Below, piece by piece: positions 7,111-11,708 of a DNA stretch of 64,000 nt; positions within the stretch are counted from its first letter, which is position 1, and the number at the start of each line of letters is the position of its first letter. The stretch lies in the sequence record MF498773.1; one strand, written 5' to 3'. The notes under the pieces were generated by a model that saw only the letters and a list, made by a program, of their open reading frames with translations, made no database searches and was not told the origin of the DNA. The position numbers and the translations under genes are program-made.

Positions 7111-7668
7111 TTACTTTTGGAATGGGTGCCCTGCACCGATACCGACCGGGGTTTGTTTTGGTAGGATTTCCAAATCGTTTACACCAACAACACTCATAGA
7201 TGAGTAACTAAACGTTACATTACCTATAAGGGCTGGGTTTCCGTCATCAACATAGGACAATTCTATATCGTCCAATGAACTCGGGAATGGGTCATGAAAC
7301 TTGAAAGTCAATACTATATTCTTTTTTGAGTTATCCAGAATATGAACCAAAATAGATCTAGGTCTAGCACCCGGTAGATGGGCGGTGGAATTGAAAGTTC
7401 TACTATCAGTAACAGAGATCATCCATTGATACAACTCTTTATAAGATTCGAAATTTTCATCAATCAAAAATCTAATCCTAAATGGTTCGTAAATGATCTT
7501 CGAACCCGGCATAAGCCCGGACGTCATCTGATTTATTGAAACCCTCGTTATATCCATTTCCATAGTTGGAAGAACAACGGATTGAGCTGATGTTACAAAG
7601 TTAGCGGTTGTGTTTGCGTCTGGGATTTCCAGACGCATGTTTGTTATGTGTGCTTGATTATGTATCAT
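7111..7668 (-). CDS. 3: Tail tube terminator/completion protein gp3
   Basis: HNQAHITN...AQSVVLP, FLIDENFESYKELYQWM, tube-like fold; synteny. Confidence 0.92.
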   Translation of the reverse strand: MIHNQAHITNMRLEIPDANTTANFVTSAQSVVLPTMEMDITRVSINQMTSGLMPGSKIIYEPFRIRFLIDENFESYKELYQWMISVTDSRTFNSTAHLPGARPRSILVHILDNSKKNIVLTFKFHDPFPSSLDDIELSYVDDGNPALIGNVTFSYSSMSVVGVNDLEILPKQTPVGIGAGHPFQK

Positions 7669-9527
7669 GTTGACGGTTGAACTCCATATGAATATTGCGG
7701 TTGATCTGGTCTAAATTCACCAAAGCCAGACGGTAGAACGGAATTCATACTGTTATATGTGGTATTATTTACAGCAGCCATTAAAGCACCTTCTTGACGT
7801 CGTGCGTCTCGTTCTTCCTTTTCACGTTGTTGTTTAGCTCGGAATTCTTCAACCTCTTGATTTCTTTTCTCAAGGGTTTTAAATACAGGCTCGGTTTCAC
7901 CAGCCTTAATTTCATTCCCTAATTTAGATTCCGGTTGAGCTTCACTAGCATTAGCTTTCCCAAATAATGATCCAGTAAGACTTTCCCAAGCACCCTTAGC
8001 AGCATCAACACCCTTATCTAACAGCTCTGGGTTCTCTTTGGCGAAGTTATACAACTCATAAGCCATCAAGCCAGCACCAACAAAAGGAATTGCTCTACCA
8101 GCGACACGTACCGCCATACCTGCACCAGTCAATGCGCTTTTTGGTATAAATTTAGAGGCTGATTTTGCTGCATCAGCAGCGACAGTCCAACCTTTTTTAC
8201 CAAGTTCCGCTGCCCTTGACAAAATACCAGCCTTACCTTTGGGGGTAGGAGTCTTTGTTTTAGGTGTCTCAATTTTTGCGGGTTGTCCCGGTCTTGGTTC
8301 TGGTGTGGGTGGCTTCTTTCCATCCGGTTGTGTAGTTTTCGGGGACTTCTTAGGATCCTTCGATACATCGTTTGGATTAACCCCACCAGACGATGGTGTC
8401 GGGGTCTTACTTCCCAATCCCGGTATCTTATCAAACATCCCAGAGAACTTAGCAATTAAACCACCAACAGCAGCAGATAGGGCACCCGCAATCATAGGGG
8501 CCAAACCAAGAACCGCACCAGATAGAACACTGATACCAGAAACAAGACCACTAAGAACAAATCCAACACCACCAATCAGTTTACCGATCAACATGGACAT
8601 CTGGATACCTTTAAGAACATCGATTAAGCTTTTATGACGCTTTTCGTTGTTCTCTCGTTCTCTTCCATTTTCTTGTCTTTCTTTCTTTTGCTCTTGGTTA
8701 TTTCTATCTGTTTTTACTTTGTCTTCTGGTTTGTTTTGTGGGATCTGTTGGAATCTAGAAGTAGCATCAGCCTTCTTCTCTTCATAAGCCGCATTCGCTT
8801 TTGCATCTAATTTCTTTTCCTTACGTGCGTTATGTGCATCAATAATAGACCCACCAACAAACTTCGTTGCATTAGCGGCCTGATTATAACCGGGAATAGT
8901 TGATAACAAATCGTTTATGGTTCCAGTAACCATACCGATACCAGCGGACATAGTATGACCAAGTATTTTCGCTGTTGCTGATGTTTCTGATTTCTTCATT
9001 CGATCAACTATATTAGCTTTTTTTGCTATCTCTCGAACAAATTTACCAGTTTTTTGATTTTCTTCTTTGAAATTTTCCACAAATTCACGACGATCACCAA
9101 CTTCGCGTTGTATAAATTCTTTCAAAGTCTCCCTAGTGTCTTCCTGCATAGGTTTGGCAGTTTCCCCCTGTTCCGGGTTCTGACTTTTTACACCTTGGCT
9201 ATAATCCACTAGGGGTTGTTTATTATTTAAAATGTCTTCCAGTTGCTTTCGTCTAGCTGAAACTAATTCGTTTTCAACCTTATTACTACGCTTATTATCC
9301 TTTCTGGCACCTTTTATCTGGTTCGCTAATTTTTCTTGTTCTTGTGCGACTTCCAGACTGGAATCAGAGGTAATATCATAAGACGCGGTAAGGTCTTTTG
9401 TTGAGTTGGACAACTTTTCTGTCTTGTCGTCCAACTTAAGCATCGAATCAGAAACAATATCCATAGCATCCGTGACATCTCGAACCGATTTATCAAGTTC
9501 GTTCTGTTTCTGCTTGTCAATCATCAC
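7665..9527 (-). CDS. 29: Baseplate hub / tape measure protein gp29 (620 aa)
   Basis: Coiled-coil N-terminus, hydrophobic GxxxG helices, Pro-rich linker; downstream of gp26/51-like gene. Confidence 0.75.
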   Translation of the reverse strand: MMIDKQKQNELDKSVRDVTDAMDIVSDSMLKLDDKTEKLSNSTKDLTASYDITSDSSLEVAQEQEKLANQIKGARKDNKRSNKVENELVSARRKQLEDILNNKQPLVDYSQGVKSQNPEQGETAKPMQEDTRETLKEFIQREVGDRREFVENFKEENQKTGKFVREIAKKANIVDRMKKSETSATAKILGHTMSAGIGMVTGTINDLLSTIPGYNQAANATKFVGGSIIDAHNARKEKKLDAKANAAYEEKKADATSRFQQIPQNKPEDKVKTDRNNQEQKKERQENGRERENNEKRHKSLIDVLKGIQMSMLIGKLIGGVGFVLSGLVSGISVLSGAVLGLAPMIAGALSAAVGGLIAKFSGMFDKIPGLGSKTPTPSSGGVNPNDVSKDPKKSPKTTQPDGKKPPTPEPRPGQPAKIETPKTKTPTPKGKAGILSRAAELGKKGWTVAADAAKSASKFIPKSALTGAGMAVRVAGRAIPFVGAGLMAYELYNFAKENPELLDKGVDAAKGAWESLTGSLFGKANASEAQPESKLGNEIKAGETEPVFKTLEKRNQEVEEFRAKQQREKEERDARRQEGALMAAVNNTTYNSMNSVLPSGFGEFRPDQPQYSYGVQPST

Positions 9528-9698
9528 TTAGTCCTTTTCTCTCGCCTGTTCTTTAAGATCGTTTAGGTAGAGGTGAACATAAACACCAAATTCAAAGGGG
9601 GTCATATCCTCAAGGTCCGAATGGCTCCATCCATCTTTTCTAAGCTTATATACCGTATTAAAATGATCGTATATGGTATGGTTAACAAGCGTTATGCG
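9528..9698 (-). CDS. -1 frame extension of the gp26-like gene (56 aa, gp51 C-terminal-like)
   Basis: Open -1 frame RITLVNHTIYDHFNTVYKLRKDGWSHSDLEDMTPFEFGVYVHLYLNDLKEQAREKD with no canonical start before codon 32; follows T TTT TTC. Confidence 0.8.
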   Translation of the reverse strand, partial: RITLVNHTIYDHFNTVYKLRKDGWSHSDLEDMTPFEFGVYVHLYLNDLKEQAREKD

Positions 9699-10477
9699 AA
9701 AAAACTTTCTACCCCTTTAAGTGTAACAATTTCTTGGTGTCCACATTTTTTACACTTTACAGGTATATTTAGAGTATGTTGGGGGAGGGATGTTACAAAT
9801 TTACCCATTTTGGTCAAAGCAACTGAATCGGCGTATTCCATAATTTCAGAAATATCCTCATACGGAATATCAACACCAACCTTAACAACCTGATCTCCCA
9901 TATGAACTTCGTCAATACAGCGATTGATTAAGTTAAACAAGTCGGACTCAACTTCTACGTTGAAATATTCAACCTCGCTGATATTAGGATATCTCATATA
10001 AACTGTCATGTTCTCATTAAGAACAATTTTGTTATCTGGTGCATCCGACAATTTAGCGTTATTCAAGTTTACGTTTACTTTGATATCAGAACCACAACGA
10101 ATAATTTCACCATATTGGTCATATTGAACATTACCATCTTCATCAAGAATTTCGTTGGCGCAAGTAAACATAACCGGGACAGTAGGACTTGCTTTTGATA
10201 ACTTATACAAAGCTAGATAAACTGCTTCCAAGTCAAACACAGGTAAAAGGTCTACATCAACATTATCAGTTAGGATACAGTTTTTTACGATTTGGATGAT
10301 TGCATCATCGATTCCAGTATTGGCTTCGTTAGCTAACATCAACAGTTTCATTTCTTTCATCAAGAAAGCACGAACCTTGATCTTTCTACCATCTGATAAA
10401 GTCACATTGGTCTGCTGTACGTTTTTCTGCATAGCAGCAAGAAGTACACTCTTGTCAATTGTGGTTTTGTTTGTCAT
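9692..10477 (-). CDS. 26: Baseplate hub assembly chaperone gp26/gp51 family (261 aa)
   Basis: KIKVRAFLMKE, MRYPNI, CKKCGHQEIVTLKGVESFF match recalled T4 gp26 (CPECGKTHAHVIRGLKEFF). Confidence 0.88.
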   Translation of the reverse strand: MTNKTTIDKSVLLAAMQKNVQQTNVTLSDGRKIKVRAFLMKEMKLLMLANEANTGIDDAIIQIVKNCILTDNVDVDLLPVFDLEAVYLALYKLSKASPTVPVMFTCANEILDEDGNVQYDQYGEIIRCGSDIKVNVNLNNAKLSDAPDNKIVLNENMTVYMRYPNISEVEYFNVEVESDLFNLINRCIDEVHMGDQVVKVGVDIPYEDISEIMEYADSVALTKMGKFVTSLPQHTLNIPVKCKKCGHQEIVTLKGVESFFA

Positions 10478-10553: not shown

Positions 10554-10669
10554 GTTTCACTTGTAATCAAAGTATAAAATCTCTATAAGTATTTATATAG
10601 AAAATCTATAATTAGAAAGAGTGAGCGAAGCGAACAGGCGGCTACGCCGTCTCACTACGTTCGAGATCT
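10554..10669 (-). repeat. 116-bp hairpin-rich element, inverted copy at 53672-53789
   Basis: Near-identical reverse complement (2 substitutions, one 2-nt indel); contains GCGAAGC, GGCG-GCTA-CGCC, TCTC...GAGA hairpins and TATAAATA. Confidence 0.95.
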
Positions 10670-10678
10670 GTAGATATG

Positions 10679-10702
10679 AAAAAGCCACCCCGTAGGATGG
10701 CT
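10679..10702 (-). terminator. gp54 terminator, identical 24-bp copy at 54161-54184
   Basis: GCCATCC-TACG-GGGTGGC-TTTTT (UNCG loop). Confidence 0.88.
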
Positions 10703-10707
10703 TAGTA

Positions 10708-11649
10708 TTAACGAATGGCTTTCACAACGCCTGTAGTACGTCTTATGATACTCTCTATAGAGTCGATGGTGTTCTCTTCACCCTTAGTAGGAACATGCAC
10801 TGTAGTTGATACAGCGAATGTGACGGTAAAGGTTGCTACTTGAGAATTGTTCTCAAAATCTAGTTGAACTTCACCTACCTCTATGGGAAAGCACCCTGTA
10901 TTATGTACAGTGGATTGCTTAACTCCATGACGGTCTAACGTGATGACGTCAATATCCTTTGCATACGTATTATAAAATCCAAATTGTCCATTTCTTGGGT
11001 TGACAATTGTATTCTGCCATGTTAACATCAAAGAACGTTCCTCATAAGAAGGGGAACAGTAAAACGTCATACTCATGGTTCCGTAGTTTCTACCTCTTAC
11101 TTCGTGTCGAGGTAGTTTGTCTGTACGGTTGATTGTCGTTTCCAAAGTAGAACTAGGGAGTCCGACGCTTTTTACCATAAGTGCAAGATCGCGGTTTACA
11201 TCATAATCGGTTCCCAGAAATCCATCAAGGATCTCTCCTGCTCCCGGTATGATCCGGATCAAGGACGGATCCCAAGCACCAAAAATCTTCTTCATGCTAG
11301 GCGTGAGGATTTTGTGTGCTTGTCCCAATGCAATATCTGATATTCTATGCCATGCATAACTTGTACCCGAGAATAAGCTATCATTGACATCAACTCCGCT
11401 ACTTGAGTCCGGAAATATTGGCAAATCCCTGTCAAAAACACCATCACTGAATATGGTTGTTCTAAAATCCCCAAATCTTACGATAAACATGTTTGGTCTT
11501 GCTAAATCGGTGTTCTCGACTTTTCGCATAAACCTTGTTAGATCTGGTATCTCGCTCCCATCTACATTGTCATTTAATAAATCTTCTCCAAATCCGATAG
11601 TGCTATCTATCATACTATCAATAGTCGGGATTGGTGGTAATAAATTCAT
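10708..11649 (-). CDS. 54: Baseplate tail-tube initiator gp54 (start MNLLPP)
   Basis: DLARPNMFIVRF, MVKSVGLP, GCFPIEVGEVQLDFENNSQVATFTVTFA; GGAG RBS at this start. Confidence 0.92.
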   Translation of the reverse strand: MNLLPPIPTIDSMIDSTIGFGEDLLNDNVDGSEIPDLTRFMRKVENTDLARPNMFIVRFGDFRTTIFSDGVFDRDLPIFPDSSSGVDVNDSLFSGTSYAWHRISDIALGQAHKILTPSMKKIFGAWDPSLIRIIPGAGEILDGFLGTDYDVNRDLALMVKSVGLPSSTLETTINRTDKLPRHEVRGRNYGTMSMTFYCSPSYEERSLMLTWQNTIVNPRNGQFGFYNTYAKDIDVITLDRHGVKQSTVHNTGCFPIEVGEVQLDFENNSQVATFTVTFAVSTTVHVPTKGEENTIDSIESIIRRTTGVVKAIR

Positions 11650-11708
11650 TGAATATTCTCCTAAATACTTATATAATGTATTTACCCACAAAAATAATAG
11701 GATTTCTG

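Follow-up and report, generated by a model that had tools for sequence, protein, structure and literature searches.

Aeromonas phage AS-szw (Straboviridae, Emmerichvirinae, Ceceduovirus) probably uses a programmed −1 ribosomal slip to join its gp26-like gene to a 56-residue, gp51-like tail, a reading to which we assign a probability of roughly 0.8. We analyzed a stretch of 64,000 nucleotides (nt) of its sequence record, MF498773.1, hereafter the window, whose coordinates are used throughout; every gene of interest lies on the minus strand. A 3.1-kb portion compared with the record of this phage was 100% identical to it. The sequence comparisons reported here establish the slip site, its conservation, the coding nature of the −1 frame, and the homology of the encoded peptide to the C-terminus of gp51.

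The gp26-like gene (9692–10477, minus strand) appears in the list of open reading frames (ORFs) as an intact zero frame of 261 amino acids (aa), the predicted short product, and is annotated 'baseplate hub subunit'. It terminates AGT TTT TTC GCA TAA and contains the slippery heptamer T_TTT_TTC at 9698–9704, in the zero-frame X_XXY_YYZ register one codon before the stop. Translated from position 9704, the −1 frame (9528–9704) encodes F-F, continues for 56 new codons (9531–9698), and closes with TAA at 9530–9528. The next gene begins at GTG 9527 or at the annotated ATG 9524, the −1 stop lying 3 nt upstream of the annotated start. Upstream of the heptamer, no more than 4 codons of the −1 frame are open, and the zero and −1 frames therefore overlap by approximately seven codons. 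The 167 nt following the gp26-like gene carry no annotation in the GenBank records of AS-szw and its close kin. Both frames are intact and there is no broken gene at the locus. A first-pass annotation, made from the letters of the window alone, had described this gene end and heptamer, a −1 frame open for 56 codons with its stop directly before the next gene, the absence of ATG, GTG, or TTG from that frame until codon 32, and products of 261 and ~316 aa; each of these readings was confirmed, with the first start codon at index 33 when counted from the heptamer and with predicted sizes of 261 and 316 aa.

According to the proposed mechanism, most ribosomes translating the late mRNA would stop one codon past T_TTT_TTC and release a 261-aa hub-assembly chaperone. 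A minority would slip back one base with the two Phe codons in the P and A sites, then read the 56 additional −1 codons to yield a protein of ~316 aa whose C-terminus is a module of the gp51 type. Both products would be built on a single chaperone body, with the module present on a fixed proportion of them. The logic would be that of the lambda G/GT chaperones, here acting on the hub and on the long protein encoded next door. We infer the ribosomal nature of the slip, its efficiency, and the partners of each domain, and the chaperone role of the products would follow by analogy from T4 genetics. In T4, both gp26 and gp51 are classed as chaperones of hub assembly, gp51 being absent from the particle (PMC3004832).

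We surveyed 98 loci for the slip site, comprising the window, 15 GenBank phages (T4 included), and 82 IMG/VR contigs, gathered with single proteins as queries. The resulting counts are not phylogenetically independent, since 80 of the 98 loci are cyanophage-like contigs. The motif NNT TTT TTY was found in frame, zero to one codon before the stop, in 97 of these loci, far beyond chance; T4 was the sole exception. Eleven further loci brought the total to 109. Six of these contain the site (Xanthomonas phage X1, C48C1, Methylophilales phage Melnitz, Caulobacter phage Cr30, Prochlorococcus phage P-SSM7, and an island in Photobacterium damselae) and five lack it (the T4-type phages EcS1, CC31, and NP4, Vibrio phage D493, and an Aeromonas salmonicida island). 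The conservation of TTTTTTC at the 3′ ends of gp26 genes, which the first-pass annotation had singled out for examination, was thus borne out: the site and a homologous −1 module occur together in 103 of 109 loci, and the site is absent from the four T4-type phages. It ranges across at least five genera of Aeromonas phages, KVP40-like vibriophages, cyanophages, and phages of Pseudomonas, Xanthomonas, Caulobacter, Ralstonia, and Methylophilales, the lineages with sampled loci being Straboviridae, Kyanoviridae, and several unclassified groups.

The constraint at this site acts on nucleotides, beyond the protein sequence, as judged from codon usage in the same genes. The codon before the T-run is AGT, TCT, GAT, AAT, or GCT and ends in T at all 97 loci, compared with T-ending fractions elsewhere in these genes of 59% for Ser, 82% for Asp, 72% for Asn, and 34% for Ala. 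Likewise, all 97 loci spell the first Phe as TTT, against a TTT share of 66% elsewhere. The position after the run is occupied by 18 different codons, and each of the three stop codons is represented. The four T4-type (Tevenvirinae) gp26 genes provide a natural control for the constraint on the T-run: they keep F-F but spell it TTC TTT or TTC TTC, they lack a −1 module, and they are followed by gene 25.

The same long protein could be made if RNA polymerase stuttered on the T-run and introduced an extra U into some mRNAs. The site is indeed a homopolymer run, extended to 7–8 consecutive T in pf16, RSP15, Cr30, C48C1, and Melnitz, and a longer run favors polymerase slippage; however, 95 of the 97 loci have only six T followed by C, and six T is short for efficient slippage of this kind. 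The constraint also takes the form X_XXY_YYZ, its seventh position being C or T in line with the demands of tRNA re-pairing, and many relatives carry a hairpin at a spacing typical of ribosomal stimulators. We consider transcriptional slippage, which one review covers together with ribosomal frameshifting (PMC5009743), an unlikely source of the long product. The motif itself favors a ribosomal slip, given that U_UU.U_UU.Y falls in the H_HH.U_UU.Y class, among the most efficient −1 heptamers in Escherichia coli (PMC4066793).

Several lines of evidence support that the start-less −1 frame is coding and under purifying selection. All 97 of the −1 peptides match one profile (worst E-value 5.6e-7). 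Between the window and phage 65, the differences over the whole module number 6, 3, and 28 at the first, second, and third positions of −1 codons; within the start-less codons 5–32, they number 3, 1, and 14. The module frame is free of stops, whereas the other two frames contain 2–9 stops. Five loci have a −1 stop immediately 5′ of the heptamer, which leaves the T-run as the only place where the frames can be joined. These observations also bear on whether the arrangement is an artefact or a relic, i.e., a homopolymer sequencing error that hides an in-frame gene or a functionless module in decay. Homopolymers are error-prone in some chemistries and the stretch is unannotated in AS-szw records, yet the same frame relation recurs in 103 independent isolates and metagenome contigs, the module is identical in 15 close relatives, and its divergence is biased to third positions. 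Given this recurrence and the stop-free module frame, we rejected both the sequencing error and the relic, either of which would be very improbable.

A different possibility is that the small −1 ORF is translated alone, by reinitiation or coupling after gp26 termination, to give a free protein of ~55 residues. There is an ATG at −1 codon 5 in 72 of the 97 loci, and in the KVP40-like phages, S-CRM01, RSP15, and Cr30 an ATG overlaps the gp26 stop. Database records annotate a separate 'baseplate hub assembly catalyst' in such relatives, and the gp51 of cyanophages and vibriophages has been handled as a short protein (Sullivan et al., 2010; PMC3037559). Among the phages examined, Vibrio phage D493 (L104:2432–3388) alone has the module and lacks the heptamer; its ATG overlaps the gp26 stop and free-standing translation is probably the rule there. 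In the window, however, 32 codons pass without ATG, GTG, or TTG and are nevertheless conserved and diverge mainly at third positions, and the module also lacks an early start in phage 65, Aeh1, phiAS5, P-SSM7, and the Photobacterium island. The annotated 'gp51' starts of relatives vary from record to record and cut off conserved residues. Moreover, free translation would leave the invariant T-run at synonymous positions unexplained. On this evidence we rejected free-standing translation as implausible in AS-szw and rate it about as unlikely as a slip of the polymerase, though it is a possible additional route in relatives with an ATG at the gp26 stop.

Profile searches connect the −1 module to T4 gp51. 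The 56-residue peptide matched phrog_634 'baseplate hub assembly catalyst' (E-value 1.7e-11) over profile positions 58–112, and residues 147–246 of T4 gp51 matched positions 2–103 of the same profile. A profile built from fifteen −1 peptides aligned to residues 200–245 of the 249 in T4 gp51 (hhalign probability 87%, E-value 3.9e-6); the same module profile gave no alignment with T4 gp26. The comparison with gp51 had been proposed in the first-pass annotation, together with the statement that gp51 ends in a similar module, and the phrog_634 and hhalign matches agree on this point. In the family alignment, gp51 runs on beyond the exact column where the gp26-like proteins end. This extension, together with the position of the module on residues 200–245, indicates that gp51 has the architecture of the long product and gp26 that of the short one. 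The sequence alignments support colinearity between T4 gp51 and the predicted long product, and between T4 gp26 and the short product.

The module is widespread among phage records. Translated searches (tblastn) with the window peptide located it in 38 phage records, its match beginning 7 nt before the gp26 stop in each of the seven loci fetched, and two different queries placed it in at least 548 and 514 phage records, respectively. A homologous-protein search with the −1 peptide returned no match. Against 1.84 billion representative proteins, phmmer recovered four short true relatives only (26–57 aa), the remaining matches being weak and in long repetitive proteins.

We also inspected the flanks of the heptamer for stimulatory elements. 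The first-pass annotation had noted a possible stem beginning 7 nt downstream; it is present in the centroid fold (9644–9690) but folds no better than shuffled sequence. The fold of a 98-nt segment gave z = +0.61, with 147 of 200 shuffles folding as well, and the 60 nt downstream of the heptamer gave z = −1.5 in the window and +1.1 in phage 65, from which the stem is absent. Over the family as a whole, the 60 nt 3′ of the site are more stably folded than their shuffled versions, with a mean z of −2.15 and a negative z in 96% of loci. The cyanophage loci have a hairpin of 11 bp placed 5–6 nt after the heptamer, with 80% of cells paired versus 28–48% when the partners were slid, and it contains one covarying pair (UA in 35, AU in 13). 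This test leans towards structure, because the hairpin was drawn by eye from the alignment and then counted, and RNAalifold found no consensus structure in 75 cyanophage junctions. A stable conserved structure 5–9 nt 3′ of the heptamer occurs in cyanophage, pf16, and Otagovirus relatives, and not in the window or its clade.

On the upstream side, we searched with a string that we take to be the anti-Shine-Dalgarno (anti-SD) tail of 16S rRNA. A purine-rich, SD-like stretch at 9712–9718 (minus strand) lies 7 nt 5′ of the heptamer and shows the strongest anti-SD complementarity in its own gene; the equivalent stretch ranks within the top 10% of its gene in 88% of the 97 loci. It also encodes conserved [E/K/R]-G codons, retained by T4 gp26, which has no frameshift. 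The SD-like stretch is accordingly an ambiguous candidate for an upstream stimulator, its evidence being confounded with these conserved codons.

The body shared by the two predicted products belongs to a known baseplate family. The 261-aa gp26-like protein is a full-length member of PF12322 T4_baseplate (E-value 2.5e-54; 184.7 bits against a cut-off of 24.5), its residues 25–261 matching profile positions 6–219 of 219, and it also matched phrog_150 'baseplate hub' (E-value 7e-59). PF12322 likewise covers T4 gp26 and the first 201 residues of T4 gp51. Searches against Pfam gave no chaperone-family match for the gp26-like protein, NCBIfam gave no match for this protein or the −1 module, and PDB sequence searches with the gp26 and module profiles gave none. 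We modeled the gp26-like protein with AlphaFold2 (mean predicted local distance difference test score, pLDDT, 90); the whole model had no significant neighbor among PDB structures. For the N-terminal 102 residues (pLDDT 81), the two top PDB fold matches were both chains of the HK97 tail assembly chaperone 2ob9 (probability 0.9, template modeling score 0.44–0.52, E-value 0.1–0.2) and YqbN (3klu) ranked eighth, the E-values overall being 0.1–1.

Two further features of this protein were observed. C106, C128, C242, and C245 are nearly invariant, the last two forming a CxxC motif, and residues 239–247 gave a weak Pfam zinc-ribbon match; the four cysteines suggest a zinc site in the second domain. 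Its structural relatives in BFVD include proteins of 313–316 aa, near the length predicted for the long product, among them one of Pseudomonas phage PaBG and one of an uncultured marine phage. These may be natural in-frame versions of the long product.

Gene order around the locus, read along the minus strand, is gp54-like, gp26-like, the unannotated 167 nt, a 620-aa gene, gp3-like, and a deoxynucleoside monophosphate kinase gene. The gp54-like tube initiator gene (10711–11691) matched phrog_45 'tail tube' (E-value 7.5e-47) and is annotated 'baseplate-tail tube initiator'; the gp3-like tail completion gene occupies 7111–7668. A consensus scan placed a terminator-like hairpin with a T-run 3′ of the gp54-like gene (10682–10703). 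A pattern search, with an octamer that we take to be the T4-type late-promoter sequence, found a match at 10590–10597, ~113 nt 5′ of the gp26-like start. Together, the octamer and the hairpin indicate that the gp26-like gene may open its own late transcription unit. Such octamers are not enriched in the window (11 matches versus 6.9 expected).

The 620-aa gene (7665–9527, minus strand; from the ORF list and annotation) is recorded as 'hypothetical protein'. Its product matched phrog_11300, whose function is unassigned in PHROG, and gave no significant match to named families, an empty PDB sequence search, and no significant similarity to T4 gp29 by BLASTP (E-value 0.18). It shows a weak coiled-coil-type match over residues 5–220 and Gly/Ala-rich hydrophobic stretches. 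The first-pass annotation had put the frameshift upstream of the tape measure gene: its position directly before the 620-aa gene stands, but the similarity of that gene to gp29 does not reach significance. By position, size, and composition, the product is presumed to be the tape measure or gp29 counterpart. The neighbors differ among relatives. In Cr30, the annotated tape measure lies two genes downstream of the pair; in RSP15 and D493 no long tape-measure-like gene follows it, D493 having a gp5-like gene instead. In the record of Aeromonas phage AP1 (MT713136.1), ~60 kb separate the region of the 620-aa gene from the gp26-like gene and its module, whereas the two adjoin one another in the other close relatives; this could be a rearrangement or an assembly difference.

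Seven points weigh against a programmed ribosomal frameshift with the role proposed here. F-F is conserved as protein, and this alone fixes four of the seven heptamer bases. The ATG at or just after the gp26 stop in many relatives means that the module could also be made alone there, and the D493 module, with its ATG and no heptamer, indicates that a free-standing module may be functional. The downstream stem is neither significant nor conserved within the clade of the window. The modeled N-terminal fold is suggestive of tail assembly chaperones at a likeness below significance, and the presumed tape measure shows no significant similarity to its T4 counterpart. Finally, the long product of ~316 aa is itself a prediction from the reading frames.

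The locus invites comparison with the lambda G/GT-type frameshift (Levin, Hendrix and Casjens, 1993; Xu, Hendrix and Duda, 2004), as presented in a review (PMC5009743). In both, two ORFs overlap, the second lies in the −1 frame without its own start, and the heptamer falls a few codons before the first stop; short and long products share a body, and the pair sits in a tail or baseplate block directly before a long gene. In contrast to lambda, the window protein belongs to PF12322, its body is roughly double the size and includes a second domain containing the four conserved cysteines, and the gene downstream is not recognizably a tape measure by sequence. The likeness drawn by the first-pass annotation is therefore upheld for the start-less −1 ORF and the conserved heptamer, while the protein likeness to chaperones such as 2ob9 is weak. 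The signal also resembles that of dnaX in its high-efficiency heptamer class, its SD-like stretch 7 nt upstream, and, in many relatives, a hairpin 5–6 nt downstream. It differs in that the window hairpin is not significant, the SD-like stretch is confounded, and the frameshift would here lengthen the protein.

With respect to T4, gp26 and gp51 fall in the same Pfam family as the zero-frame protein of the window, and residues ~200–245 of gp51 are homologous to the −1 module. Whereas the window has one gene read in two frames, T4 has separate genes 26 and 51, as the first-pass annotation had stated, and these lie on opposite strands. T4 and its close kin lack the slip site and encode the long form in frame, as a full-length gene 51, and the short form as gene 26. 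The F-F codons of T4 form no T-run, and its gene 26 is followed by 25 and its gene 51 by 27-28-29. In other relatives, the short 'gp51' ORFs of cyanophages and KVP40-like vibriophages contain the same module in the same place after gp26 but are recorded as an independent protein. Sullivan et al. (2010) described the gp51 of cyanophages and vibriophages as ~20% of the length of T4 gp51 and without its first ~200 residues, and reported gp51 as missing in Aeh1; neither an explanation nor a frameshift was proposed (PMC3037559). In our analysis, the −1 frame of Aeh1 does encode the module and lacks an early start. A search of the full-text literature, whose coverage excludes most subscription journals, found no paper proposing a gp26/gp51 frameshift. 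The mechanism itself is known from the chaperones of long-tailed phages; a T4-like gp26 gene would be a further instance of it, and an earlier description may exist.

We lean towards a broader interpretation, in which the frameshift would be ancestral in the T4 superfamily (Straboviridae, Kyanoviridae, and outliers), gp26/gp51 would be its tail assembly chaperones, and T4 genes 26 and 51 would be frozen versions of the short and long products. The direction, with the frameshift first and two genes later, may hold and rests on the distribution of the site among the sampled loci. The T4-type gp26 proteins (L010:3752–4378, L101:2465–3094, L102:2468–3097, and L106:2462–3091) have three residues, x-L-L, after F-F. 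These resemble the start of the gp51 module, K-L-L, which raises the possibility that T4 gene 26 arose by truncation of a copy of the long gene that was already in frame, and not from the short frame.

Additional observations concern chromosomal relatives and one gene start. The Photobacterium damselae island (GCA_043106595.1, JBICMR010000011.1; L108:6001–6920) contains a PF12322 gene with the site GAT TTT TTC and a −1 module of 60 residues (E-value 5e-20) that lacks an early start and ends at the start of a 516-aa gene. Genes nearby encode a large terminase, a VapE-like primase, and a resolvase; on this basis the island resembles a prophage or satellite equipped with tail genes of the T4 type. 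In Aeromonas salmonicida (GCA_053365915.1; L107:6001–6732), a chromosomal PF12322 gene without heptamer or module adjoins a CapR-family gene and two resolvases. In phage 65, gp26 as annotated (L003:821–1507) begins ~35 residues later than its aligned relatives, and this start is probably mis-called.

The tail-chaperone frameshift has been described as conserved in long-tailed phages 'except T4' (PMC5009743). Our analysis suggests that a chaperone frameshift also exists in the T4 lineage, two genes having taken its place in T4. On the ancestral interpretation, T4 would no longer stand apart from the other long-tailed phages, in which a chaperone frameshift is nearly universal. The frameshift would account for both oddities of 2010 (PMC3037559); on the ancestral interpretation, the gp51 that looks 'truncated' in marine phages and the one 'missing' from Aeh1 would be annotation artefacts. 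It would also imply mis-annotation in several hundred phage genomes, in which the module is left as a gap or as an arbitrarily started small ORF, and would offer gene callers a simple rule for the gp26/gp51 family. Of added interest, it would remove the exceptional status of T4 and assign a role to gp51.

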